Shown: piece after piece, positions 7,901 to 51,341 of the stretch
Numbering within the stretch: position 1 is the stretch's first letter
How the letters are laid out: every line of letters begins with the position of its first letter
From: Mytilus trossulus
Lineage: Eukaryota
DNA: 64,000 nt
Assembly: GCF_036588685.1 (NCBI RefSeq)
Contig: NC_086375.1
Span: 25,730,001 to 25,794,000, forward strand
Direction of reading: 5' to 3'
The notes under the pieces: model-generated
What the model was told of the DNA's origin: nothing
The model's database searches: none
The model's input: the letters and a program-made list of their open reading frames with translations, nothing else
Made by a program: the position numbers and the translations under genes

Positions 7901-10900
7901 CTTGATATGTCATTTATTAATGGAGATGTATGGGAAATGCCAATGAGACATCAATCCATTCCAATGACATAAAAATCAAATCAAAGCACTGAAAAGAAAT
8001 TAACTTTATGATGATGAAATCTCTCTCATTTTGAGGATGGTTGTATTATAATGTGATTGCATACAATTTTATGTTAAATGTGTCATTATACTTTTTATTT
8101 CATGTTCTTCCTTAAATAATTCTATATTTTGTACTCCAGAAATTATTATTTTAAATAGTTGACACCTAGAAGTGGAAAGACTTAAGTGACAAAACATCTT
8201 TTTGAAAGGTTCACAAATAAGCAATGTTGTAAGTTTTCAAGTTTCACACATAACTGTTATGATCTATATCTTTTTCTTATATTCATTTTAGATAAAGTCT
8301 GTCAGTGTCCGAGGAGAACCAAGATCCCAGCCTTTTCAGCAATGCTGACTAAATCACAAACCCCTCAAACTAATAATGCCATCAAGTTTGACAAAGCAGT
8401 CACCAATATAGGAAATGGATACAATCCAACCACTGGTATTTTTACAGCACCTATTGGTGGAATTTATCATTTTACTTATACAGTCATGTCAAAGGCAGGA
8501 AAATACCTAGTTGTCTACCTTGCTCTTAATAATACCAAACAACAAACTACATGGCTGAAAGGGTCTAGTCATGAGACTGCAACAACCAGTATTATATTGA
8601 ATCTAAAGAAAGGAGACCAAGTAGCAGTTAAGTCAGCAGATGGTATATATTCAGTTCACAGTGATGGCAACATGTATTGCTCATTTTCTGGCTATCTCAT
8701 AGCGCAATAAAAGAAATTAAAGTTCTTAGTTTGTTAAACTTAATTAAAAATGTAGATACAATACCAGCTGATAGTGGGTTTTTTTCCACAAAAAGCAGAG
8801 TCATATCAAAGTCAAATGTGTGTTTTGTTGGGTCCTAGTAGTGGTGGACTAACTGAGGTGTACTGATAGTCATGTAACTTTAAAGAAAATAACGTTGTCT
8901 AACATAAACAGTTCCTATCAAACTAACATACTGGTAATCAGAAAACTTATTGAATAACAATGAAACCAATTAAATTGTAAATTGGTAATTAATTGTCAGT
9001 GGAACATGATCTAAGGAGGTAGGGCCTCCTATCAAACTGACTTGTGCAAAAAAAAACTTATTAATGAAATCTCTAGTTAATTCAAACTCACTTGACCGTG
9101 ACCTGAACGGGAGGACCTAGAGGAGAGGACCTATAAATAATGATATACACTGATATACACTGATAGTAATGTAACTCTATAAAAAATAATATTGGTTTAC
9201 CACCAGTAGTTCCTATCATTCTGATTCAAGTGGGAAACTTAACAAATACTGACAATGCGCCAGGAAATAAAAACACTATGTCACGCCTTCATGACTTCCC
9301 TTAGAAAAAATAAATTCAAAAAAAAGTTAAAAGAGTAACAAGACCATATCAAAAACTTATCACTGAAAGGAAAATCTAGTTTAAACTCATAATATTGCTG
9401 TCATGTCAAAGTGCATGACAAAAACTCATTAACAATATCTATTTCATTTTAATTGATGGTTGTTATCATAAAGCATGTAAAGTCACGCAATTCCATCAGT
9501 ATAAAAATGTTGCAGCACAGAAACTATAGTATGTTTGGAAATCACTTTCAAGATGAAACTAACTAACTACTACACTTCCATATTGACACTACTGTTAATG
9601 GCAGAAATGGTTATGGGAACATGCGAGTCTGACAGAAAATTAGGTAAATAATATTTTTTAGCTTATAAGATATAAGATAACAAAAAATATAAAATTATTT
9701 GAACATGTTGAAGGAACTTCTAATTAAATGCTTGAAAAATACTATTGTCTATTTGGGCTTAGAAGATAACATTACTATTTTATCAAAAAGGGCTATTTTT
9801 TTTTTAGAGAGTTCTCTATCAGAGACCAGAGCAAACACTTACCATACACATTGATTTTTGAAGTTACAAAAAGAAGTTCAGTAAAAAAATATTAAAAAAC
9901 ATTTCAAAGTACATGTACAACATTTAATTTCAGATTGTTCACTTCTTGGTGATCTGCTAGAAATGGCAATGAAACAAAAAAGTCCAGGTAAGTTTCATAC
10001 CATGTTTTATTAGAATTTATCAGTAGCTATTACATATACTTGTGCAATCTAAATGCTGCAAACACATAAACTATGGCAATTTTATATAATCATTGATCTA
10101 ATGAATCCTTGTTATTGGTGTTGACAGAGACATTTATTGATAAATTATCTTTGATCATGTCAACAAGATTGATTTCTCACTTGAGCCGGGACAGAGAAAG
10201 CAGAAAAATTATCAAGTTAAGATAACCGATGATAATCTGTTTATCGCTACTTTACCTATGAAGACGTAGTCAATTTCATGTCAATTTTCGTTAGCAATGC
10301 CATGTGCCTCCTTAGTTTCTACCGATAATTTTCCATCTCAAGCAAGTAGCATTAAAAATTTTCACAAAAAAAAGATCTAAAGGAAAAATGCACAAAATAG
10401 CGATAAATTGTATTACATGTATATATCTCTGGTGTTGACAACATTTTCCAGTAGAATTTTATAAATGGCCAAGTAAAAGTATACAGATTGGCAAAAATTT
10501 CATGTCTTCCACATCAAGTTCATATTTTGTCTAAATAATTTCCTTTGTATCAGTTTTCGAAGAGATTGTATATAAAGACAATACTAATTGAACTTGATAT
10601 GCCATTTATTAATGGAGATGTATGGGAAATGCCAATGAGACATCAATCCATTCCAATAACATAAAAATCAAATCAAAGAACTGAAAAGAAATAAACTTTA
10701 TGATGATGAAATCTCTCTCATTTTAAGGATGGTTGTATTATTGTGTGATTGCATACAATTTTATGTTAAATGTTTCTTTATAGTTTATTTCACGTTCTTC
10801 CTTACATAATTCTATTTTTTTTACTCTAGAAATTATTATTCTAAATAATTGACATCTAGAAGTGGAAAGACTTAAGTGACAAACCATCTTTTAGAAAGGT

Positions 10901-13900
10901 TCACAAATAAGCAATGTTGTTAGTTTTCAAGATTCACACATAACTGTTATGATCTTATCTTATATCTTTTTCTTATATTCATTTTAGATAAAGTCTGTCA
11001 GTGTCCAAGGAGAACCAAGATCCCAGCCTTTTCAGCAATGCTGACTAAATCACAAACCCCTCAAACTAATAATGCCATCAAGTTTGACAAAGCAGTCACC
11101 AATATAGGAAATGGATACAATCCAACCACTGGTATTTTTACAGCACCTATTGGTGGAATTTATCATTTTACTTATACAGTCATGTCAAAGCCAGGAAAAT
11201 ACCTGGTCGTTTTCCTTGCTCTTAATAATACCAAACAACAAACTACATGGATGATAGGTTCTCAATATGAGACCGGAACAACCAGTATTATATTAAGTCT
11301 GAAGAAAGGGGACCAAATAGCAGTTAAGTCAGCAGATGGTAGTTATACAGTTAACAGTGATAGTAACATGTATAGTTCATTTTCTGGCTTTCTAATATCA
11401 CAATAAAAGAAATCAAATTCTTAGTTTGTTATATTAATTAAAAATGTAGACTGAATGACAGTTAAAAGTGTGTTCCTGTTAAAAGTTTTTTCCTCCAATG
11501 ATACATTCTACAGTATTAGAGGTCAAAGCTGTGTTCTATGTTTAAAATTTGAGGAGATCTGTTTTAAAAAAATTAGAATGGTGTCAAAGTGAATGTCTGC
11601 ATTTCTCTGTTTACCGGTATATGTTTTCTTGTAGATATAAATTTTCTTGGTTCTCTATCATACAACTTTACTCAGTACACAATTTCTTCTTAAAACACCA
11701 AATCCAGTACTTTGATTGGTCTATGTGTGCTTTCAAAAATATTATCATTGGTCCTAATAAACAAGAATCAAAACCGTAAGACTACATTTGAATTGTGAAA
11801 TAAAACTTTCAAGCTGTAGTAGAGATCCCTTCATTCATGCAAAATAAATGTCAAAGTTGTAATCAATATATTACCTTTTCCATATATGGTCGTACAACAT
11901 TAATTCTGAACAAATTTTCTGCATCTTTAATCTTATCTATCAGGGCGTATGTCCTCAGACATTGCTGCAAGATTTCCACATTCCCATTTTCTAGACCCTC
12001 AACAAAATGTCCTTCTAAACTGTATTGCAGTGTCGTTGTGATTGTTGTTATTCTCTGAAATAGAAATTAACAACATTTATATGTAACAGTATATAAAAGG
12101 GAGACAATTTAAGAGTAACTTACAGGGGAAATAATCAACCTTGGACATGATATAACTCAACAGCTACTTCCATTGAAAACTTTGAGTATGAACTATTTAA
12201 TCAACATGCTCAATCAAAATCAGTGTTGACTGGTTCCCAGTCCTTCTTTTTTATATTCAAAACATCTTCTTCCTCCATTGATTTCAATGATTTCAACCCT
12301 AGTCTACAAAGATTGCAATGAAATAATGTGTTTTAATTACAGTGAATAACAGAATTTCCAAAAATCTGTGTACAGAATGTATTTATAAATACTTGTGTCA
12401 AAAGTACAACCCAAAACATTTATTCTAGAGCCAGAACCTTGCATTATGGTTAGAAATGTCCTGGCTTCCAATGGAGGTAACCAAAATAATAATCCTAGTG
12501 ATAGATTTTGTTTTCCTGAAATTTTCAATAGTTCTTTGGGTAGACAATTATCTTTATTAGCACATGGTTGATGGACTGACATTTACATCTTTCATATTGG
12601 AAAATGATAAAAAGCATTTAAATTTTAGAGTGCTTTACAATGCACTTCTTACTAATAATAATATTAAGAGTCATGACAAAAATTAACTTTTGGAACCTTT
12701 TGTGAAATAGTATTAAATGTGCATTGTGTATTGTAACTATAAAGACTATCTAAGTCTTCAGATGGTTAGCTAAAATTGAGAATGGAAATGGGGAATGTGT
12801 CAAAGAGACAACAACCCAACCAAATAAAAAAACAACAGCAGAAGGTCACCAACAGGTCTTCAATGTAGCGAGAAATTCCTGCAGCCGGAGGCGTCCTTCA
12901 GCTGGCCCCCTAAACAAATATATACTAGTTCAGTGATAATGAACGCCATACTAATTTCCAAATTGTACACAATGTGTTCTTCAAGTTCAAATTCAATTCA
13001 GATTTTTTTCAAGGAAAGATAACTTACTGGTCTTATTTTGTCTACTAAGGCATGTCCTTTGCTCTTTGTAACATTAAACTGTAACTTGTTGAATTCATTG
13101 GCTACTCTTTCAATCAACTGTCCAGTCAGTGTTCTGTAAAGAAGTTAAATCATATATAAAACTTAAAACAAGATTACAAGCAAAAGTCTTCTTAAGTTTT
13201 CATTTTGATCTGATATCTATCATATCTATTGAATAACTATTGTGTGCATCTAGTTGCAAAACTGTCAAGCTATACACATGATACATGTACAACTAGGTTA
13301 GTTAGTAGATTAACAGAGATGAAAATAAGAAATAAGGACTGCAACTGGAAAACAGGAATTTTTTTATGAAGGGAAAAATTTGTCTTGCAAAAGGTTATTA
13401 TCAGAAATTTCAAAAAGATATTGCAAGCATGGCAGTCTTTCAACATAGGGTACACAATTTTGGCTATGACTCCTTCCTATCAGAATATGCAGCTTTTTGA
13501 TTGTAAAATATTTTTTTTTAATTACTCACCCAGTAGTGGACTCATTGTCTGAGATACCCAGTAGCTTCTCAATTTTCTCCACTGAGCTTATGATATTCAT
13601 CAGTCTCTGTAAGCATGCCTGAAACAGAAAATTAATAGACACATGTCAAACAAATCTATGTGACAAAATTAGTTTTAGACAACATTTTGCTTACTTTCAT
13701 TTTACACTGAAAATGTCTATTTTGTATAAACTTATTGAAATTGATTACTTTAATAAGTGTTAACTCTTACCAACTTTTCATAATGAAAAGAGGGAATCAA
13801 TTACCGTATTTCACTTTGTCTTCATGACTTTTTTTTATCGTCTAATAGTCAGGAAAATGAAAACCAGCAACTAGTGTGGAATTGCTTCTGAATAAAGAGT

Positions 13901-16779: not shown

Positions 16780-17024
16780 AGTCCCAACTTGTTTTGCACT
16801 GCTGGCAGGACGGGGAATAACTCTTGGCATAACCGGATGTAAATTCGTTGCTCAAACTAAAAACCCAAAACTCATTCAATGGAGTGTAGACAAATCTTTT
16901 TTTTTTTACTTAAAAATATATATACTCAGAGAAACAGATGATTTGATATTTGAAAACTTCTTTCATCCGCTAATGTTTCGTATTTAAACAATGTGACACA
17001 TGATTATAACTTTATTCTTTGAGT

Positions 17025-17124
17025 AAAATGAAAGTCTACTCGGAATTCTTCAGGATTTTTCTTCTGTAAATCAAAACGAAAGTAGGGAATTCCCAAAAAA
17101 TATAACCACTTGTCTCGTGAGTCA
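17025..17124 (+). promoter_or_regulatory. Candidate immune-inducible module in the COG2 / TIR-death-domain bidirectional promoter: 2x IRF-type element, kB site, AP-1 site
   Basis: AAAATGAAAGT 17025-17035, AAAACGAAAGT 17073-17083, palindromic GGGAATTCCC 17085-17094, TGAGTCA 17118-17124; probable non-coding exon donor CAA|gtaaga at 17168; ETS-like ACCGGATGT at 16832-16840 on the COG2 side. Confidence 0.65.
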
Positions 17125-17503
17125 CAGAAAATAAAAACAAGAGTCCAACTTGATCTCAAGGACACAAGTAAGATATAAAGAGTTATTTTCATTTTTGAAG
17201 ATTATTCAAATATGTGGTTTGCATTTGATGACACAGTTGACACTGTCATAGACATCTTAATTTGCCTTAAAAAAGCGAAGCGACTTCTTCCCCCTATTCC
17301 CATGTGACATGAATGGCATTTTTTCGGGATGGGCATAGATCATAACAATCCATTTAGGATATTAAAGTTCAAATGGGGTATAGATTTTTAATGCCAAATT
17401 GCCAAATATATCAATTGATAAGCAAAGCTGCTTTTCAGTGCATTTGTTTAGAATAACTACAAAATAGAAATTTAGGTTGGCAACTTTTCCCGAAAATGAA
17501 TTA

Positions 17504-17798
17504 GGGAGCTACCATTTGATTTTTATGGGGGGGGGGGGGGGGGGGCTAGGATGAAAAATTGTGTCCTGCCTTTTTTTTAAATTTGTAATCTCTGTCTTGC
17601 CTTTTTATTTTTCAGTCTATTCGGTCCTGTCTTCTTCTTTTTTCTTAGCTTATCCTGACTTTTTTACAACAATTGTCATCCTGTCTTTTTTTTTGCCAAG
17701 TTACTCATCCTGCCTTTTTTTTTTTAACTCTAAATCCTGTCCTGCCTTTTATTTCAAATTTCATCCTAGCCCCCCATAAAAATCAAATGGTAGCTCCC
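17504..17798. mobile_element. PIF/Harbinger-like MITE in the 5' UTR intron of the TIR-death-domain gene
   Basis: tta|GGGAGCTACCATTTGATTTTTATGGGG..CTAGGATGAAA ... TTTCATCCTAGCCCCCCATAAAAATCAAATGGTAGCTCCC|tta; 3-bp TTA TSD. Confidence 0.75.
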
Positions 17799-18097
17799 TT
17801 AGTTGCAAAATTGTTTCATCCGAAAATCAGTATCTTCCAAGAGATCAAACTCATAAACATTCTGGTACATATAAAAGAAAAAAGATGCTGATTAAAAGTT
17901 TTTGCATTTATTTGATAATTTATATACTTAGCAGACTTCAATGTGCAGTTCTCAAAAAAAAACATGCACCTGATCTCTTCAAAATTATTTTACACTAGAA
18001 TTGATTATTTACCTTACTATGAACTTGTTTTAATACTTGCAGCCAAAGATTTTTGAAAAGGCTGGTTAAAAGGGTATGAAAACACTGCAAGATTAAG

Positions 18098-21000
18098 ATG
18101 GAGTTAATTTGTTCATGTCATGCAGCTACCAGTAGAAGAGTAAAGCAGATACAAGATATTTGTACAGGAAAGGATATATCTGTAACTGTTAGGCAATGTA
18201 AAGGTATGTATTGTCAAGTTTTTTAAGTGGCTAAAATGTTTGATTTCAAGTGTGTGTGTGTTTTTACCCCCCCCCCCCCCCCCCTGTTGTATGCATTCTT
18301 GCTGTTCAATTTATCTAAATCTTTAACAATAGAATGGAAGAATAGTTCTTATTTTGTGCATATCTTTTTAATACATAATACATTTGACAGTAAATGAAAA
18401 ATTAGTTTTGCAGATCATGATTTTGCCATATGTTCTGTGGCTATTTTGTTTGCTATCTTGTCAATTACTGATTCACTTTTTAAAGATCTTCTGGTCTAAT
18501 TTAAACCCAAATTAGAACAAACAGTCCTTGCAATAGCCAGGTTGAGAGTTATTTTATATGTATGAAAGAAGTCACCCTTTTAAGAGATGAATTATTTGTG
18601 TTTACAAAAGATTTTATTTGTTTTGTATTTTGTATTTATAGTAGTGATATATATATTGTATTTATACCAATAGCAAAATCAAACTTTATTTTTCAGGAAT
18701 TGAAGATGTTAAAAGATTGGAACTTGATGTAAATAAATGCTGTGTGCTAATACTAGATGATGAACTGGTTGACTTATTAGAAAGTTGTGGAAGACTTGTG
18801 GCCAAAATACTAAGTATGAATGGTTGATTTTAAACTTGAAAGGAGGGAGAATTATAGGAAAGGGCACTTATCATTTTATCCTGAAGTTTATTGGATGTTT
18901 ATTATTTATTCTCAGACTGTTGAAAATTAATTTTCAAAAGTGTTTACATCATTTCAAAACAGATTTTATGAAAAAATAAGTAGAAAAAGCATATACAATA
19001 AAACTAAGTATTCCATATTGATAAAACTTTAGTGGGTTTTCTATATGAATGGAATTTTGAATAAATAAGCATATTCGCCTGCCATAAAAGTATGTTCAAC
19101 ATGCAAAATGTTGCGTGTTTTACGTGTATAATTTTGGTAAAAAAACGCTTGATGTACAATTGGTTTTGGTAAACTAATTTGTATTGGCAGTGCTTTCATT
19201 TGATTTAGCTGACATTTTTTAAAATGTTGCTTATTGTGAAGTTGATAACGCTGATCTATATAAATTTTGAAATTAGACAAATGTTTTATGTAGTCAATGT
19301 TTTAACTTTAATTCATTGTGATAATTACCACTAATATTAATTTGAAATTTTCTGTTAGAAACAGGGGACCATTTTGGGGCCTACTCTAACCTTCCTGTAC
19401 TTTTCAGAGATAACATCAAAGCCTAACAAGTTGATATATTTCAAACTTGTTACTTGCGAGAAAATGGAAATGTTTGACGAATGTGAATGGAGGCAATGTG
19501 TTAACTCGGAGGAGGAACTGATCAAAATTTATACAACAAAAATATGTAAATCTCCGACAGAGTCTGATGGTAGGTACATAAAAAATTCTAAAGAAAAAAA
19601 AATATTCAGTTCTTTTAAACATTAAATGATCTAATTTTAATGTATGAAGAAATTTATGAACTGTATACCTGTACATAAGAAAACATTAAATGGAAACAGT
19701 AAGGAAGAATTTTAGATCTAAGTTCTGGTGTGGTGATTTAGATATTTCGCCTTAAAATTGTTGTGTTGTTTATTTGTTGAAACTTATTCACAAGTTTTTG
19801 TTTTGAATTGAGGGAGTCAATAAATGGCATAATTTATCACAATTTTTTTATAAAGAAAAATGTACATTTATTAGTAAAGGCCATGGGATTTGCGTCTAGT
19901 TGATTATTACATCACCATGTTCCAACCTTTTCTGTCATTCATACATAGATTTATTTTAGAACAAGAGTTGGGGTAAATATTTATGATTTTTTTTAAATCC
20001 CTCACACTCTATATTTTAGTTTTAAGCTCACCTGTGAAAGGGGCCAAGTGAGCTTTTCTCATCACTTGGCGTCCATCGTCCATCATCATCCGTCGTCTTT
20101 AACTTTTACAAAAATCTTCTTCTCTGAAACTACTTTGCCAAATTTAAACAAACTTGGCCACAATCATCAATGGGGTATCTAGTTAAAAAAATGTGTTGGG
20201 TGACATGGCCACCATGGTTAAAAAAAGAACATAGGGGTAAAATGTAGTTTTTGGCTTATAATTCAAAAACCAAAGCATTTAGAGCAAATCTGGCATGGTG
20301 TAAATTTGTTTATCAGGTCAAGATCTTACAGACGAATCAGACAACCCGTCGTTAGGTAACTTAGGTTGCTGCCCCTGAATCGGTAATTTTAGGGAAATTT
20401 TGCTGTTTTTGGTTATTATCTTGAATGTTATTATAGATAGAGATAAACTGTAAACAGCAATAATGTTCAGCAAAGTAAGATTTACAAATAAGTCTACATG
20501 ACCAAAATGGTCAGTTGACCCTTTTAGGAGTTATTGACTTTTATAGTCAATTTTTTACCATTTTTCGTAAATCTTTTATATCTTTTACAAAAATCTTCTC
20601 TTCTGAAACTGCTGTGCCAAATTAAACCAAACTTAGCCACAATCATCATTGCGGTATCTAGTTTAAAAAATGTGTCCAGTGACTTGGCCAACCAACCAAG
20701 ATGGCTGCCATGGCTAAAAATCGAACATAGGGGTAATATGCAGTTTTTGGCTTATAACTCAAAAACCAAAGCATTTAGAGCAAATCTGACAGGAGGTGAA
20801 ATTGTTTATGAAGTCAAGATTTATCTGCCCTAGAATTTTCAGATGAATCGAATAACCGGTTGTTAGGTTGCTTCCCCTGAATTGGTAATTTTAAGGAAAT
20901 TTTGCCGTTTTTTTTCTTCTTATAATAATAGATAGAGATAAACTGTAAACAGCAATAATGTACAGCAAAGTTAGACCTAAAAATAAGTCAACATGACCAA

Positions 21001-24000
21001 AATGGAGTTATTGCCCTTTATAGTAAATTTTTAACAATTTTCATAAAATTTGTTAATTTTCACTAACATTTTTCACTGAAACTACTGGGCCAAGTTCATT
21101 ATAGATACTCATAGAGATAATTGTAAGCAGCAAGAATGTTTAGAAAAGTAAGATCTACAAACACATCACCATCACCAAAACACAATTTTGTCATGTGTCC
21201 CCTGTTTAATATTCACATAGACCAATGTGGGCGACACAAGCTCTTTAGAGCCTCTAGTTTTATATGTTATATATTTTTTCACAATTTCAGAAACATCAAA
21301 TACATGTCAAACAATGCAGTCATTGAGCTTGCAGAGTGCAGAGTCTTTGTCCAATTCGTTGTTTACAAATGAACCAGCTGTGAACCAGTCATTGAAAATT
21401 ACTCATGCAAGTATGTATCTGCAAAGTTTTTCAATATTGTGGATTCATCATTATTTGTTGGATATCAATCTCGAGGATCACAATAGATGAACCACAAATT
21501 AAAAATGTTTCAACAAAGTATAAATTTAATTTATGCTTGTATGCAGACTTTGGAAAAACAGCTAAATCAAATATTCACAAAAATGGTACCTATGAAATAG
21601 ATAAATCCACAATGTAGTAATATAAGACAAGTGAATTATCCTGTTTTTGTAAAATTGGTTAAAATTGTGTCTGATTCTCTCCCTTGACTTACTTTGTATT
21701 AATTTGTTTCAAAGAATAGAAATTTTTGGTGTCCATGTTGATTTGCATTTATTTTTGTAGGACCAGAAGCTGTAGAAAGTAGACATTCTTTCTCTAGTGG
21801 GGATGACAATCATGATGAGAAACAATGCCAGAATGACTTGAAAATACAATCTGAGGAGAAAGGTGTTAATAAGTCAAAGAGTGAACAAAATCTTGGTAAA
21901 TACATTCATAAATTTGATTATTTAATATTGTGTGTTTATCTAGTACACAGCAGGGTTTATATTCATGTCTCATTAACATTTTCTGATTTTGATTTGCCAC
22001 TGGAAAATTAAAATAGCCATCCATTACCATCATCATGCACACAAGTCTAGTCTAAAGTTCCTAACAGCTTCTTCAGTTCTGATGATTGTTGCATTAGATA
22101 GCAGTATCTGTTAGAAGATAAATAAGTGCTCCTAAATCGATTTTTTGATTGAGTACAGTTAGTTAAACACGCCATATGAATATCATTTCCCCATTGATCC
22201 GAAATTCTAACGGCCATAGGTGGAGAGTAGGGGACTGGATTGTAACCATTTGCTAGCAAAGATGTAAATTCATAAATGAGGGGGCAGGACCAATTTTAGG
22301 ACGTCGGAATCAGGTGTTTTTAAGCTCAGGATTTCAGGATGTTGGGATTTGAATTTATTTAAATTCAGGACCTCGGATTTCATGTTTTTAAGACCATGAT
22401 TTTTTGGACCCCTCCAAACCCCCCTCATACACCACGGCTGTGGTGTAGTGGTTAGTGCATCGGACTACTAACACAAAGGTTCCTGGTTCGATTCTCGTTT
22501 GGGATGAAAATTTCAGGAACTCAATTTTCGGCTCTCTCTTGACACCATTTGCGAGTATGGTCTTGAGGAAACGATGATAGTCCGTCGGACGGGGACGATA
22601 AATGGCTGACTCGTGTTAAGAGAGAGTCATATCTCTTGCACGTTAAAGACACCCTTGTAGATTTCGAAAAAGAGTAGGCTAATGCTGCTACAAGGCAGCA
22701 CTTGCACCCGCAAAGTGGAAAGGGATTAATATAAGTTGTAAAACTTGTTTCCCAATCCACTATAAACAAATATGTTTAAACTAAACCCCCCTCATATAGT
22801 TTGTAAGTTTCATTGTTTTTTTCAGGTTCCTCAGTTAGTTTACCAGAAAACAAACAGAATAATTTTGAACACAAAGGAGACAGGAAAAGTTTACCAAATG
22901 ATTTACAGAGTGTTGCTACAAACAACTTATATCCAAGGTTGAGTGGAATTTCATCATATATGGAAGCAGGAATGTCATATGGCAATGCACAGTCACATGG
23001 CAATTTGCCAACACATTGTCATTCAGAGTCACAAAGTCAATTCCAGTCCCCAACCCTGAATAGACCATTACAACCTTGGTCTTCTCCAAATGGATGTAGC
23101 TTTAATTCATCTGGTCCTCAGGCTATGACTTGTCAGAGTGGCCAGGGATACAGTTGTCGTTGTGGTTCATGCCAAACGCTGCATCAACACTCTGCAAGTT
23201 TTCCTCAGTTCCATACCTTACAGCCAAAATCTATAGCAGGCAGTTCCACTGGCAGACCTGATACAACCAATAACATGAACTTTAGACCAGAGATAATTGC
23301 CATCAACAGAGGTTTTACACCAACATATAATCCTAATATACAGACAGATGGATCAGGTTTGCAAATTAGCATTTTAAAACAGCTGCATTCTGGGTAATCC
23401 TTTCAAATTGGGTAATGGAATTAAAATTGTGATTGTTGATAACAGTATATAGGAACAGTGAAATTTTAGCCGACAACATGGCATTATTTAAATCAGTGAC
23501 ATATACTTCAAGTGAGCTTTGCAACTCAATTAAAAGGCTTTATTGTTTCATTGAAATATCATATGCATCTTTCATTATTTTTGCACACTACTTTTTCACC
23601 TTATGCTGTAAGTTTTTTCTATGTATTTTCGAAATTGTTGAGATAATCTTAAAATTAAGGTGGTACCTAACACTACAGGGAGAAAACTCTGTAAAGTCAG
23701 CTTAACGTTTTAATTACATTGTGTTGTAAAGGGAATAATAAGCTTCTCAATGATCAAAAATGGTGTTTGTCAAATTGCTATATAACCAGTGTATTTTTTC
23801 TGACAAAAGGTTGGTTCAAAATTTTTGAAATTTTAAAATTTTTGTTAAAGGGTCAGAGTAAAATACTTTGTCATAATTTTATGAAATTTAGACGAGACAA
23901 ATTTATTTTAGGGAAAGTGTTGGTAAAAGATAATAGGTATCCTACAAATAATAGTAATGAATCAAACGTAAATTGTACAAATTAACTGTGTTTTTGTCAA

Positions 24001-27000
24001 TGTTTTTTTTTTTTAAGAATTGTAAAGGAAGGACAGAGAAAGTTCATGTAATCAAATAACTTATTTAACTAGCTCTGTTAATTCATTAAGAATAGCTCCT
24101 TCCTCTCATTTAAAAAAAAAATATTTGTTTTTTATTTCAGATAACAGGACCCTTTCTTGTGACCATTGTGGACATTCTGTTATCCCAAAACATGAAATGG
24201 TAATTATTCATAATTGTTTATTACACTTAGTTACAATTGTTCTCTACAACCATGTAAGTGTGACTAAGTTGCAATATAAGCTAAAAAAAAAAACAGAATA
24301 AAAAAATTATGAGATGTAGGACATATTGTTATTAGACCATCTTTACTGTGGCTTTTGCATATAGGCTTTGTTTCTCCTTCAAATTTTAAAGACTCAATCA
24401 TGAACATTTTTTACCTTCAATCAAGGCCCAAGAAATTGGTTTGCCACAAAAAAAAAATGAAATTGAGACACCCATTTTTTTCTGACACATCATATAGTGT
24501 TTTTTTTAAATGAGACACCCATTTTATCCTAACACATCATTTAGTTTTTTTGGTTTTTTTTTCTGTACTTCTGTGTTTTATTTTGCAGAAAATATTGATT
24601 TATTTTAGATTTTAATGGGTTTTTTTCATGTTTTAATAATCTATTTTCTATTGTATATGTACTTTTTAAATGTTTCAAATTTTGCATTTTCAGAGTGATG
24701 TTGGACCTTCATATGAGACTCATCATTCTGCTGGTATGTTTTGTTAATAAATTTTTGGCTAAAAATTATAGTACCAAGGGAAGGCACTTTCAAATGGGAA
24801 TATTTCATTTACATTTTCTCTTTACTTTACACAAATCCATAGTTGAAATTAAATTGCCTCCCCAGCAGGGTGCAGTGTGTGTTTTAATGGGAGAAAAAAA
24901 AACAGCCATAACAATGGATTTCTGGAAAGTATGCCAAAGTAAACAGCTCACTTCAAGATCAACACCTGATGCCAATTTTTGAACCCTGTGTTATAAAAAT
25001 ATATTGTATTTATCTTACATCTTATATCTTATATATGCTTCAATCAATTATCACAGTAAAAAGCAAAAACAAAAACATTGTAAATTACACTTGCCCTTGA
25101 TCTCACTTTCATTATTAAAATTCTGCACTGCATTAAATCTATATATATGTGTCGTGTTCATTTTATTATTTTGTTCAGGTTATTACTTGTACAAAAACTT
25201 TGTATGAGTAATGACTTGTATGATGCCATCATACAAGTTATTACTTGTACAAACTTGGGTTTGTAAGTCTGGGAAACATTTGTCCACTGTTGGGTATTTA
25301 TTTAATTGTTTTTTGATTTATTCTTACCATTCAACGTATGTTTTATAAATCTATATTGGGTTTGTTTTTCTTTTCTTTTTTATCAACTGAGTATCAATGA
25401 TATTTTTTTTAAATGTTAGAAGATAACAAAAAAACAACGGACCCAAAGTAGCAACATGAGGTAATATGACACCTTGAGCAAATTTAGCTAAACAGCTTGT
25501 TGCCACATACACGGACTACTGGTGCAAAGTGACAAAGTTGTTAAAATCAAGGATAGAATAAAACCCTTCTACCATTTATTTTCAAGTATAAATCATGATA
25601 AAAAGTTGCATATGTAATATCATATGTATTGGAAACAAAAGTAATGCTTGATAAATCAAATAATCTGTTGGTTTGCCCAAGACAAGGACTCATGACATCT
25701 GGAACTACACAATAAGCTCAATCCTGCATAGCACCATTCTCCATGTGAAATTATAATTGATTTAAATAGACAAAATTATTTTTATTAAGACGTTTGCATT
25801 TTTATGACGCCCAACATGCGAAACAAGGAATGTGTTTTTTAATTTGGTAGATGCTTTTTGTGCTTTTTGTGTTTGTTGTATATGTTTGTTTGTCTTGAGA
25901 TTGAAAGACAGCGATGACTGCTGTAACCATTTTTTGACTATTTTAACAATTATGTCTGTTTTGTTCACGCATCTTTGTAAAAATAACAGAATTTGATGCC
26001 ACTGTCATATAAGTGAGAGGTTTAGCTAGCTATAAACCCAGGTTCAATCCACCATTTTCTACATTTGAAAATGCCTGTACAAAGTCAGGAATATGGCAGT
26101 TTTTATATGTTTTATCCTTTGATTTTGCCATTTGATTAGGGACTTTCCCCTTTGAATTTTCCTTGGAGTTCAATATTTTTTGTGATTTTACTTTTTGGAT
26201 TTAGATGTGCCTGTCTTACAGCCACGTTGACAGCTGCAATGAACATGGCCATGGTCACCACTAAAAGAAAGCAATTGTACTACTTTCATGATGTTAGCCT
26301 CAGTGTTCTCTGGTATTTCCAACATTGAGTCTGAATCTTTCCGATTGATTTTTAGTAATTAAACCAATCATAATTTCAACTTTTGTTTCTATTTTGTATC
26401 CATTTTTAGGCAATATTCAGCATTACTCTTGATATTTCTAAAGGCGTCCAGACCTCGGTTTATCAACTGTACAATAAAAAATAATTTCATCTCCTTTGCA
26501 AATGAGTTTTGCGATTTCTGCTTCATTCAAAACAACATAATGACGTATGAAATATCTTTGATGTGCTGTCTATTTTAGATCTCTTAATTTTACTTCCTTT
26601 ACATAAATACTATGCTTACGTGTGTGAATGTCGAATTATTAGAAGAATTATTTTCATTCCAAAATTAATCATGTCATCATGCTCTTTTGTCTCTACACTT
26701 TTTATGCCCCACCTATGATAGTAGAGGGGCATTATGTTTTCTGGTCTGTGCCTCCGTTCGTTCGTCTGTCTGTGCGTCCATTCGCTTCAGGTTAAAGTTT
26801 TTGGTCAAGGTAGTTTTTGAAGAAGTTGAAGTCCAATCAACTTGAAACTTAGTACACATGTTCCCAATGATATGATCTTTCTAATTTTAATGCCAAATTA
26901 TAGTTTTTACCCCAATTTCATGGTCCACTGAACATAGAAAATGATAGTACGAAGTCCAGGTTAAAGTTTTTGGTCAAGGTAGTTTTTGATGAAGTTAAAG

Positions 27001-27945
27001 TTACATCAACTTGAAATTTAGTACACATGTTTCCTATGACATGATCTTTCTAAATATAATTCCAAATTAAAGTTTGACCCCAATTTCACAGTCCAATGAA
27101 CATAGAACATGATAGTACGAGTGGGGCATCTGTGTACTATGGACACATTCTTGTTTTTTTAAAGTTTTGCTCATATTATGTGATAAACAAAAAGTACACA
27201 CATGTTGAATGTTTATACCTTTATGTTTTATTCATATAATATTTGTTAAATAATAACGAACAGTTGAGAACATCACTTAGGCTAAGAAAGAATAATGATT
27301 TGTACAAGTTATTATCTTTTTTCTCAGTAAAAATTATACTAGTAATTGCTTGTACAAAAATATCTTCATTTATAATGAGCAATTGGTCAGCTGTATTTTA
27401 TGTGATTTATGTGCTGATGTTTGTCTTTTCAAATGCTTTTTGTTTTTTGACATGACCTTGTGTGTTTGAGTGTTTTAGTTTCTTTCTCTTCTCTTTCTTA
27501 TCTTATCTATATAAAATTGCAAGATGTACACATTTCTCCTAACGTGAATGAGTATTTTCACCGGAAAAGTTATAAGTATTGAATATTTATCTTTAAAGGT
27601 GGTGCTTCTGGTATGACAGAGAAAGAATACACGAATCCCGACAAAATCAGTGTATTAGAATTAAAGGAAGCAGTTATGGTAATGATAAGAGACACCCTTG
27701 ATTGTTCCGATTATTACAACTGGAAGAAACTTGCCGACCTCCATAAGTGGTCCTTTGGTCGAATATACCAGCTTGAACAGAAGTGGAAGAGTCGTAAAAT
27801 CGAGAGTCCTTTCATGCATCTGATTGAAGAATTTCAGCATTATACCCTTCTAGATCTGAAGGAAGATTTGAAACAAATCCCAAGAAAAGATCTGTTGCAC
27901 AAAATAGAGGAACTTCAGAGGGGAGGAATGTTGTTCCATAATTAG
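18098..27945 (+). CDS. Putative signalling adaptor, 538 aa: N-terminal TIR-like (BCAP/BANK1 type) domain, S/Q/N-rich linker, C-terminal death domain
   Basis: Nine phase-consistent GT-AG exons: 18098-18203, 18697-18813, 19408-19569, 21291-21410, 21761-21895, 22826-23356, 24141-24199, 24694-24733, 27599-27945 (1617 nt including stop). The last exon LDCSDYYNWKKLA...IESPFMHLIE..YTLLDLKEDLKQIPRKDLLHKIE has the MyD88/IRAK/EDARADD death-domain pattern. The N-terminal NKCCVLILDDELV...KITSKPNKLIYFKLV...FDECEWRQ resembles the BCAP TIR (less certain). Confidence 0.82.
20024..21257 (+). mobile_element. Helentron-associated interspersed element (HINE/DINE-1-like), family A, about 500-bp internal repeats
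   Basis: 5' subterminal IR AGCTCACCTG..CAAGTGAGCT, (CGTC)n-like microsatellite, tandem core repeats, and a 3' end with the short hairpin GCTCTTTAGAGC. Confidence 0.75.
22277..22427. mobile_element. Short MITE with TGAGG...CCTCA termini (other copies 28726-28876, 61529-61715)
   Basis: Three similar copies; 4-bp TSDs TTCA (28726 copy) and TTAC (61529 copy). Confidence 0.65.
22430..22782 (+). mobile_element. Full-length tRNA-derived SINE (Meta-SINE-like) with a perfect 14-bp TSD
   Basis: A box TGGTGTAGTGG, B box GGTTCGATTC, central GGACGGGGACGATAAA...TGCACGTTAAAGA; TSD AAACCCCCCTCATA at 22416-22429 and 22783-22796. Confidence 0.85.
26701..27153 (+). mobile_element. HINE family B with about 170-bp internal repeats (other copies 56591-57016; minus-strand fragments 42525-42677 and 58148-58325)
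   Basis: ATGCCCCACCTA..TAGAGGGGCAT 5' IR, (CGTC/CGTT) microsatellite, duplicated core CAGGTTAAAGTTTTTGGTCAAGG..., 3' GTGGGGCAT..TGTGT..GGACACATTCTTG. Confidence 0.75.
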
Positions 27946-49556: not shown

Positions 49557-51341
49557 ATTGCAAGTAATGTACCCCAATGTGAGCCATGTGCTGAAGTTGG
49601 GTCATACCTTGAAGCAACACGATGGTGCTACGAGTGTCAACAATGGTTTTGTGACAGTTGCAGAAATATCACAAACGTCTGACTGCTACTAAAGCACATA
49701 CTTTGCTATCAAAGATAGAATATGAAAAACTTCCAAATATGGCATCAGCTATCAGCAGAAAATGCCATAAACATTCCGATAAGCATCTTGAATTCTATTG
49801 TAATATTCATGTTACTGCTAAATGCTTTACTAGCATGAAAGAAGATCATTCGTTATACAAAAGCCATAGCAAACTAAAAGATGTTGCATCAGGAACCAAA
49901 ACGTCTGCAGCTGTCACAGACATAATGGCTACCTTAGAAGATTTTGTTGATGTCTTTGAAAAGCTACACAAAGATCGAAAGACTAATAAGGACAACCTAA
50001 AAGCAGCAAAAGATATTATTGATGCAAAAGTCCGGAACCTTCTTGATGAAAACCAAAAATATCTAAAACAGCTAGCAACTGACTTAAAATCAAAAGCACA
50101 TAAGAAATATACCACAGAAGCATCAGCTTTAGATTTAGAGATAAACAATTATAAAACCAAAAGGTCTGTTTTAGAGAAGAAATTATCTGATGTAAAAACA
50201 ATGGTGGAGTATGCATCAAATGAACAAATGGTTTTGTCTCTAGAAGACATGAACAGAGATGTTTCAAAACATGAAGAATACCTACAAAGTCTAGACGGAC
50301 ATGTATTCACAAAAAAACTTGCTGTTGATTTTAATTTGAATGCCCTGCGTTGAAGGGATACAGTGCGTTCCTTTGGACAGGTATCAGTTCAATCAAATGT
50401 CCAGCGAGGCTCGCTGCTACAAATAAAGCCATGGTGCCAACAAAAAACCCAGCAAAGTTAACAAATACATCTTCGATAGCGACGAGTTACAATAAGGTCC
50501 CCTCCTCTGATGTACGAAAAAAATCTGAAGCAAGACCATTTGGTGACACCTTTGTTCTAGTACGCCAATTTGCCATTCCGCAACCGAAAGCACAGAAAGA
50601 GAATGTTATAAGAGATATCAAATGCCTTCCTAATGGATACCTTGCAATGACCGATAGTGAAAATAGTCGAGTTCTTATTATTGATCAATATGGATTGACA
50701 ATGTTGGAAGAATCTCTTCAAGGAAGGCCAAGATGTCTTACTTTCACAAAAGATGGGAGAATTGCAGTAACGATGTTTGATCTGCAGAAAGTGCTCATCT
50801 GGAACCCATATCAACCATCAAAAAAAGAAAGCATTGATGTCCATGACGAGTGTACTGGGATTGCTTGTGTCAATAATATTTTGATCATTAACTGTCAAAG
50901 GAGGGGTCTTCTGTTGTATAATGTATTAGACACAAAAAGCAGAAGACTTATAGAGTACACTGGAAAATTGGACATACATGAATTTGGTGTAGATAATGTT
51001 TGTATTTTCAAGTCAAAAACAAACGACTTTATAACTTTGAAAATAAATTCAGGAGCTGAGAATGGACGTTTTAAAGTTTACTCTAAAATGCCATCATGTC
51101 TTGCAAAAGAAGACTTTGACAAATTCTACATTATCAATTCTTCAAATGCTGTAACAAAAATTGATACCAAATCATGTAAAAGTGGACTTGTTCTTGATGT
51201 GTCCTTGATGTAACAAACCACAGGCAATAGACTTTTGTCGAAAAATCTAGAGGTCTGATGTCATTTGAAAGTGTCAACAAATTTTACCTCTTTGTTGTTA
51301 ACAATGATGGTAGTTCTATTTTAATGTTTCAAAAAAAGTAA
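49557..51341 (+). pseudogene. B-box/B-box/coiled-coil/NHL-like beta-propeller (TRIM-like, RING-less) pseudogene
   Basis: ATT-GCA-AGT-AAT-GTA-CCC-CAA-TGT looks like a mutated MASNVPQC start. B-box 1 CEPC..ATRWCYECQQWFCDSC/QKYHKRL..TKAH is frameshifted near 49660; degenerate B-box 2 CHKHSDKHLEFYCNIH; coiled coil; frame break near 50350; propeller repeats (IRDIKCLPNGYLAMTD, GRPRCLT, ECTGIAC); stop at 51211-51213 before the apparent ancestral end LFVVNNDGSSILMFQKK* at 51341. Confidence 0.8.

Follow-up and report, generated by a model that had tools for sequence, protein, structure and literature searches.

Bivalves possess very large, domain-shuffled innate immune repertoires, and shuffled proteins with Toll/interleukin-1 receptor (TIR) and death domains are known from them. 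Among the described proteins closest to the one presented here, MyD88 has the order death domain, short INT region and TIR domain, while members of the BCAP/BANK1/Dof family start with a TIR domain followed by DBB and ankyrin regions. The TIR domain of BCAP (PIK3AP1) is a negative regulator (PMC5241739, PMC7128310), and the invertebrate CIKS/ACT1 proteins possess, in this order, an N-terminal death domain, a U-box together with TRAF sites, and a C-terminal SEFIR domain (PMC11087794). As far as Gerdol et al. (2017) are cited in PMC8662601, TIR censuses of bivalves rely on sequence models. Here we describe a gene of the mussel Mytilus trossulus located on the forward strand at positions 18098-27945 of a 64,000-nucleotide stretch (hereafter the window; C3:25730001-25794000, contig NC_086375.1) from a 1.3-Gb assembly of 541 contigs. 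Its 538-amino acid (aa) product, a candidate signalling adaptor, belongs to an undescribed family in which a BCAP-like TIR domain invisible to Pfam is joined to a death domain of the myddosome type, a combination that is new and conserved in bivalves.

The gene lies in AT-rich surroundings (GC content of the window 27-36%) and consists of nine exons with AG acceptors and GT donors throughout, the total exon length of 1617 nt corresponding to 538 codons and a TAG stop with no internal stop codons, which exactly reproduces the nine phase-compatible exons proposed in an earlier note on this DNA. Exons were searched singly, the joined protein of the window was used for the stop count and for motif mapping, and the whole-protein analyses described below were performed on database homologues in place of it. 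Exons 2-6 are all symmetric, being of phase 1-1 as would be expected if they were shuffled modules. The gene is single-copy in the genome.

RNA data, namely Logan contigs and raw reads, were placed over positions 17000-22999. Five GT..AG joints at the predicted borders (18203>18697, 18813>19408, 19569>21291, 21410>21761 and 21895>22826) are present in Logan contigs from run X1, run X5 or both, two runs that come from different studies and carry two organism labels; exons 2 and 3 are found on a single contig, as are exons 4, 5 and 6, and the joint of exons 1 and 2 additionally occurs in two raw reads of run X21. The spliced form of the contigs means that X1 and X5 contain RNA, and exon 1 is the first exon because the contigs begin near 18052; an in-frame TGA (18077-18079) within its transcribed sequence is located upstream of the ATG. 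In the stranded raw run X21, few reads fall on exons 1 and 2, and their first mates map to the minus strand, which is what a plus-strand mRNA should give. The gene is therefore real and transcribed, with the splicing of exon 1 through to exon 6 observed directly.

The joints of exons 6/7, 7/8 and 8/9 are supported by colinearity with the 533-aa orthologue P0001 of a related mussel and not by reads of this species, so that the junctions of the earlier note are seen in RNA for the first six exons and supported by the orthologue for the rest. By TBLASTN, P0001 is colinear with the window exons at identities of 35% (exon 1), 52% (exon 2), 55% (exon 3), 49% (exon 6, over 168 aa), 87% (exon 8) and 83% (exon 9), with no match below an E value of 1 for exons 4, 5 and 7. 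This dependence on the orthologue counts against the adaptor reading proposed below, as does the low expression (depth of 3.5 or less in the two raw RNA runs). A word search with the death-domain exon returned nothing but genomic open reading frames (ORFs), P0042 and P0002, from relatives; none of its results was a transcript of this species across exons 8/9, and the protein collections hold no full-length protein of this species. One might then suppose that the model joins two genes, with the TIR-like exons and the death-domain exon on separate transcripts. Yet the ORFs of P0001 and its cluster mate P0026 run without a break through Logan contigs 1672 and 1840 nt long, which is mRNA size, so the whole 533-aa frame is carried by two transcript-size contigs of the related mussel; the NCBI models of scallop and oyster have the same ends, and in the window the splice sites are canonical, the phases fit, there are no stops and no additional start or stop signal is needed. 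Such a joining of two genes by the model is accordingly regarded as very improbable.

Exon 9 (27599-27945, plus strand) encodes residues 424-538 and the stop codon, and comprises a GGASG motif and what is, according to the modelled fold of its homologues, a death domain of the MyD88/IRAK/Pelle type. In the AlphaFold2 (AF2) model of P0001 the C-terminus is a six-helix bundle with a predicted local distance difference test (pLDDT) value of about 90, which Foldseek matches to the IRAK4 death domain 2a9i (TM score 0.69, root-mean-square deviation (rmsd) 2.0 Å, probability 1.0). The VIA structure search of 48,161 solved chains placed the MyD88 death domain 6i3n_M first (Z 11.9, rmsd 2.2 Å, 92 aa), followed by those of Pelle (1d2z_A, Z 11.6) and of MyD88 in the myddosome (3mop_A, Z 11.6). 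The death domains of Ankyrin-G, NF-kB, PIDD, RIPK1 and FADD rank lower (Z of 9.3 or less, with 8.5 for RIPK1 and 8.3 for FADD); the top 12 matches, down to the MALT1 death domain at Z 8.2, are all death domains, and the DED and CARD folds come after them. The death domain of the oyster homologue gave the same VIA result. The fold and these structural matches assign the last exon to the myddosome class of death domains, as the earlier note had proposed for the domain itself. The Pfam Death match (PF00531) stays below the gathering cut-off in the window (15.6 against 22.6 bits) and reaches 14-22.5 bits in homologues, one of which, P0012, passes at 23.7 bits.

The N-terminal domain, about 125 aa long and encoded by exons 1-3, had been read in the earlier note as a TIR domain of the BCAP type. 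The structural case for this comes from the oyster homologue P0037, residues 1-139 of which are modelled by AF2 as a (beta-alpha)5 domain with pLDDT values of 81-94. The top Foldseek rows for this domain include TIR-STING, PdTIR (TM 0.65), BtpA/TcpB (TM 0.62), the SEFIR domain of ACT1 and plant and bacterial TIRs, with the TIR domains interspersed with other flavodoxin-like folds. In the VIA search, the "cryptic TIR" of BCAP (5FOR) is first among the 48,161 chains (Z 13.0, rmsd 2.5 Å, 128 of 134 residues, 16% identity) and the best in Z, rmsd, coverage and identity alike, followed by the RPS4 TIR (Z 11.8) and PdTIR (Z 11.2). The seven best matches are all TIRs, the first non-TIR being a decarboxylase wing domain at Z 10.8-10.9, and the SEFIR match (Z 9.3-10.1) falls below the TIR matches. 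By ESM features, the N-terminal domains of P0037 and P0001, proteins with a whole-protein identity below 30%, are assigned to the same TIR clusters (0.90-0.91).

At the profile level, hhalign aligned the N-terminal domain with the genome's own TIR_3 domain colinearly from the first strand with a score of 21.1, a value reached by none of 200 shuffles (mean 12.0 +/- 2.3, maximum 20.5), and with the central strands in the register that the earlier note had suggested. A hidden Markov model (HMM) of oyster and scallop N-terminal domains, built without mussel sequences, finds the N-terminus of P0001 (E 6.4e-5), and exon 2 is its best ORF in the window (E 0.011). A TIR fold is thus quite probable for the N-terminal domain of the family, as far as models can tell, whereas for the BCAP type as its closest relative the chances seem about evenly balanced. 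The shorter N-terminal domain of the window protein is placed in this TIR-fold family by homology. The earlier claim consequently holds for the modelled oyster homologue, with 5FOR as the best match; in the mussel orthologue as modelled, only the order of the secondary-structure elements agrees with it, and for the window protein it depends on the relationship that the HMM detects.

Several results weigh against a TIR assignment. No Pfam TIR family (PF01582, PF13676, PF18567, PF08357) is matched by the window exons and six homologues at E values up to 10 or by ten other family members at E values up to 1, and PADLOC and a profile search of PDB sequences revealed no TIR; phmmer against PDB sequences likewise gave nothing relevant. 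The N-terminal domain of P0001, although showing the element order b-a-b-a-b-a-b-a-b, has AF2 pLDDT values of just 50-70 and alone matches only generic Rossmann-like folds, so its model was not used for the fold assignment, and the multiple alignment behind the AF2 model of P0001, with 10 sequences, is thin. TIRs are separated from other flavodoxin-like folds by 2-3 Z units only, and the hhalign probability is just 3-4%.

These points would fit a generic flavodoxin- or receiver-like domain unrelated to TIRs, attached to a death-domain adaptor of some other pathway, e.g. an IMD/RIP-like or a TNFR-type one. The lack of a TIR signal at the sequence level, the response regulators and decarboxylase wing domains found at Z 10-10.9, and the gastropod homologues, which are IMD-like in having only a linker and a C-terminal death domain, all favour that reading. 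It is hard to reconcile, though, with seven best matches that are all TIRs, with 5FOR leading on every measure and with TIRs also at the top of the Foldseek search and the ESM feature search of two sequences with less than 30% whole-protein identity, and the death domain is nearer to MyD88 and Pelle (Z 11.6-11.9) than to RIPK1 (8.5) or FADD (8.3). We consider it unlikely and retain the TIR fold. The TIR_3 match expected by the earlier note did not materialize in any member of the family: over the whole genome Pfam TIR_3 detects a single locus elsewhere (L001, C7:31937177-31937560, plus strand, 25.9 bits) and does not match the window. The TIR_3 domain at L001 is situated in a 197-aa open frame of a single exon, and this locus probably represents the mussel's true homologue of BCAP/Dof.

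A phmmer search with exon 9 against 1.84 billion representatives yielded just 25 matches below an E value of 0.001, the best of which is P0001 with 83% identity over the death domain, and a word search with the N-terminal domain of P0001 returned P0001 itself only. All the named members are molluscan "uncharacterized" proteins, namely those of the scallops Ylistrum and Argopecten, the oyster Saccostrea and the gastropods Haliotis, Gigantopelta, Aplysia and Nucella, to which a profile word search added the oyster transcripts P0035-38. The complete layout is shared by scallops (XP_060063033, XP_069115470), oysters (XP_062621586, Saccostrea echinata, P0036-38) and P0029, and comprises an N-terminal domain of 105-165 aa starting from residue 1, a (P/A)TES[DE][DE] motif, a long S/N/Q-rich linker and the death domain. 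The order of TIR-like domain, linker and death domain recognized by the earlier note is therefore conserved in mussel, oyster and scallop homologues. The gastropod members consist of the linker and the death domain, with no N-terminal domain in the models inspected. In our searches the family turned up in molluscs only, and the N-terminal domain in mussels, oysters and scallops only; no paper on it was found in a literature search. A full-length MAFFT alignment misplaced the mussel N-terminus and was not used. The NCBI gene model P0007 (Saccostrea cucullata XP_062621586) omits some 45 residues from the central part of the N-terminal domain that are present in its congener P0035, probably because an exon was skipped.

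The linker is disordered according to AF2 (pLDDT below 50 over the exon 6 region in the P0001 model) and contains several conserved short motifs: E-x-H-x-S-F/M-S-S, one or two CxxC knuckles around SSGPxAM, FRxEILxI[DN], PxNI[QP] and GGASG. In the oysters (P0036-P0038, residues ~445-505), the scallops and P0029, SSGPEAM is flanked by two CxxC knuckles, modelled in the oysters as short hairpins with pLDDT values of 53-68, and the mussels keep the second Cys cluster only (CRCGSC). This region may be a small zinc-binding module.

Directly after the N-terminal domain, at the end of the fold and the start of the disorder, the window protein carries the motif PTESDE (aa 124-129), which is encoded at 19554-19569 and 21291-21292 (plus strand), on either side of intron 3, and is the sole match in the 538-aa protein to the TRAF6-binding consensus PxExx[F/Y/D/E] (PMC10776578). 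At the same position are PTESED in a scallop, PTESDE in Saccostrea and PSEYDE in the other mussel. Two considerations tell against a docking site: the proline is replaced by alanine in Crassostrea-like oysters and P0029 (ATES[DE][DE]) and in Argopecten (ATKCEE), and by our estimate roughly one in three proteins of such length would contain a PxExx[acidic] match by chance. As the proline is not conserved across the homologues, the conserved core is the acidic TES-D/E stretch. Binding of TRAF6 by the mussel motif is plausible from its sequence, while for the family it is not secured; the motif reported in the earlier note does span the exon 3/4 junction and fit the consensus, and it is its proline that is not shared by the family. 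The TRAF6 profile PF18048 gave no match in this genome, nor did it in the control genomes.

Compared with the described systems, the adaptor resembles MyD88 in that a single chain holds both a TIR-fold domain and a death domain, the MyD88 death domain being the best solved match of the latter, but its TIR-like domain comes first and its death domain last, Pfam TIR models do not detect the TIR, and the short INT region is replaced by some 300 aa of disordered linker containing a TRAF6-type motif. With BCAP it shares a domain that starts at the very N-terminus, is structurally the best match, is cryptic to classical TIR models and is aligned by hhalign in a register colinear with the genome's TIR_3 domain; it differs in lacking Pfam TIR_3, DBB/TIG and ankyrin regions, with a death domain instead. 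Similarity to CIKS/ACT1 lies in a STIR-superfamily domain, a death domain related to those of MyD88 and IRAK, and a long middle part in which TRAF-binding sites are located; a functional analogy is plausible, although the order is reversed in the adaptor, the SEFIR match is inferior to the TIR matches and no U-box was detected. Its death domain is of the same structural class as those of IRAK1 and Pelle (Pelle Z 11.6, IRAK4 TM 0.69) and, like IRAK1, it has a PxExx-acidic TRAF6-type motif, while lacking a kinase domain and having a TIR-like one. The long disordered region preceding a C-terminal death domain recalls Drosophila IMD and RIPK1-type proteins, above all in the gastropod homologues without the N-terminal domain, but in structure the death domain stands closer to those of MyD88 and Pelle than to that of RIPK1; no RHIM-like or IAP-binding motifs were recognized by eye in the linker.

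Membership in three of these families was considered and rejected: MyD88 because of the reversed order and the non-canonical TIR, BCAP/BANK1/Dof because neither DBB nor ankyrin was found by Pfam in any member, TIR_3 was not matched and the true TIR_3 gene is on C7, and orthology to CIKS/ACT1 because of the wrong order, the absence of SEFIR and U-box Pfam matches and the weaker structural match to SEFIR. By analogy, the adaptor would functionally most resemble those of the MyD88/BCAP/CIKS type, with a STIR-type domain for assembly close to the receptor, a death domain like those of MyD88 and IRAK, and a disordered middle part bearing TRAF sites.

The reading we favour, and hold to be somewhat the better bet, is that of a single-copy expressed bivalve gene coding for a modular adaptor that links or tunes TIR receptor signals. 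Such an adaptor would be made up of four parts: the N-terminal TIR-fold domain, unseen by sequence models and structurally nearest to the cryptic TIR of BCAP; the acidic TES[D/E][D/E] motif directly after it, in this mussel PTESDE, as a putative TRAF6-type docking site; the disordered S/N/Q-rich linker with its conserved short motifs; and the C-terminal death domain. We infer all of its partners and its pathway as follows. When Toll-like or IL-1R-like receptors are activated, the TIR-like domain would become part of TIR assemblies at these receptors or at their adaptors; the death domain would be incorporated, together with MyD88 and IRAK/Pelle, into a helical death-domain assembly resembling the myddosome, and the PTESDE motif would recruit TRAF6. 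In this way the protein might connect the TIR signalling of receptors with NF-kB/AP-1 output, or tune it.

The same parts could also serve as a brake, with the TIR-like domain capping or disturbing TIR filaments of the MyD88/MAL type as the BCAP TIR does, or with the death domain poisoning myddosome assembly. This would agree with the BCAP TIR being the best structural match of the N-terminal domain, given that BCAP negatively regulates TLR signalling (PMC5241739, PMC7128310), and with the fast evolution of that domain (35-55% identity between the mussel orthologues compared to 83% for the death domain). The conserved TRAF6-type motif and the other linker motifs, however, suggest the recruitment of effectors over mere blocking. 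In amphioxus CIKS1, which has a STIR-type domain and a death domain and is a strong activator, the death domain recruits IRAKs and is needed for strong NF-kB/AP-1 activation, its removal abolishing activity (PMC11087794). This role makes an activating adaptor, by analogy, slightly more likely than a decoy, and we give the decoy a minor though appreciable chance. A bolder form of the favoured reading is a one-chain shortcut of the myddosome in bivalves, in which a cryptic BCAP-like TIR, a TRAF6 site in the style of IRAK1 and a death domain of the MyD88/IRAK type were brought together by phase-1 exon shuffling, and which would allow TIR receptors to reach TRAF6 by a route independent of a kinase, or would be a switch dedicated to that route; all TIR censuses would have missed it, since its TIR is invisible to sequence models. 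We put this forward as a rather doubtful extension.

The exons, all on the plus strand, divide the protein as follows. Exon 1 (18098-18203, aa 1-36), covered by RNA contigs over 18052-18204, contains the start codon and codes for the first strand and the first helix of the TIR-like domain; exon 2 (18697-18813, aa 36-75) codes for its central strand and helix (CCVLILDDELVDLLESCG) with the family-invariant L-D, and exon 3 (19408-19569, aa 75-129) for its final strands and helices along with the first five residues of PTESDE. Exons 4 (21291-21410, aa 129-169) and 5 (21761-21895, aa 169-214) belong to the linker, which is disordered in the former; both joints of exon 4 are present in the X1 and X5 contigs, and exon 5 possesses the conserved E-x-(R/H)-H-S-F-S-S (21775-21798), aligned across the mussel, oyster and scallop proteins. 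The S/N/Q-rich exon 6 (22826-23356, aa 214-391) carries SSGPQAM (23107-23127), CRCGSC (23155-23172), FRPEIIAIN (23281-23307) and NPNIQ (23329-23343), motifs that are kept across bivalves, with GPQAM present in Aplysia too. Exon 7 (24141-24199, aa 391-410), again linker, has canonical splice sites and the sole frame compatible with phase-1 entry, and by eye it corresponds to residues 388-404 of P0001 (DNRTLSC... compared to DNRAVLC...); its CDHC at 24158-24169, like CRCGSC, is one of the linker Cys clusters pointed out in the earlier note, and both are indeed present. Exon 8 (24694-24733, aa 411-424) is the last of the linker exons.

Outside the exons, three intron or upstream stretches (20000-21250, 22400-22800 and 17400-17800) show an RNA-contig depth in the thousands with many back-joints and loose ends, and their letter differences from the window are identical across all four runs. 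They are high-copy transcribed repeats and not exons of the adaptor gene. The last intron contains a unit of about 100 bases in two direct copies (26760-26860 and 26940-27040), which look like copies of a short interspersed element, and in intron 1 a run of about 18 C residues (18268-18285) immediately follows a TG-rich stretch.

Upstream of the adaptor gene, two tandem C1q ORFs are located on the plus strand at 8186-8710 and 11038-11406 (Pfam C1q, E values of 6.5e-28 and 2.9e-25), as is typical of bivalves with their expanded C1q repertoire. At 49658-51213 (plus strand), a long ORF of 231 aa directly adjoins another of 287 aa; the first appears coiled-coil-like by eye and the second shows a weak beta-propeller match of the WDR19 type (23.4 bits, below the cut-off); the pair may represent a TRIM/NHL-like gene.

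The family shows that censuses based on sequence models miss TIR domains recognizable by structure only, and it suggests that BCAP-like cryptic TIRs may occur beyond the BCAP/BANK1/Dof family. In one adaptor it would unite a TIR domain, a death domain and a TRAF6 site, which are used in sequence by MyD88 and IRAK1, and would thereby offer a compact entry point to how signals of Toll/IL-1R-like or IL-17R-like type reach TRAF6 in molluscs.

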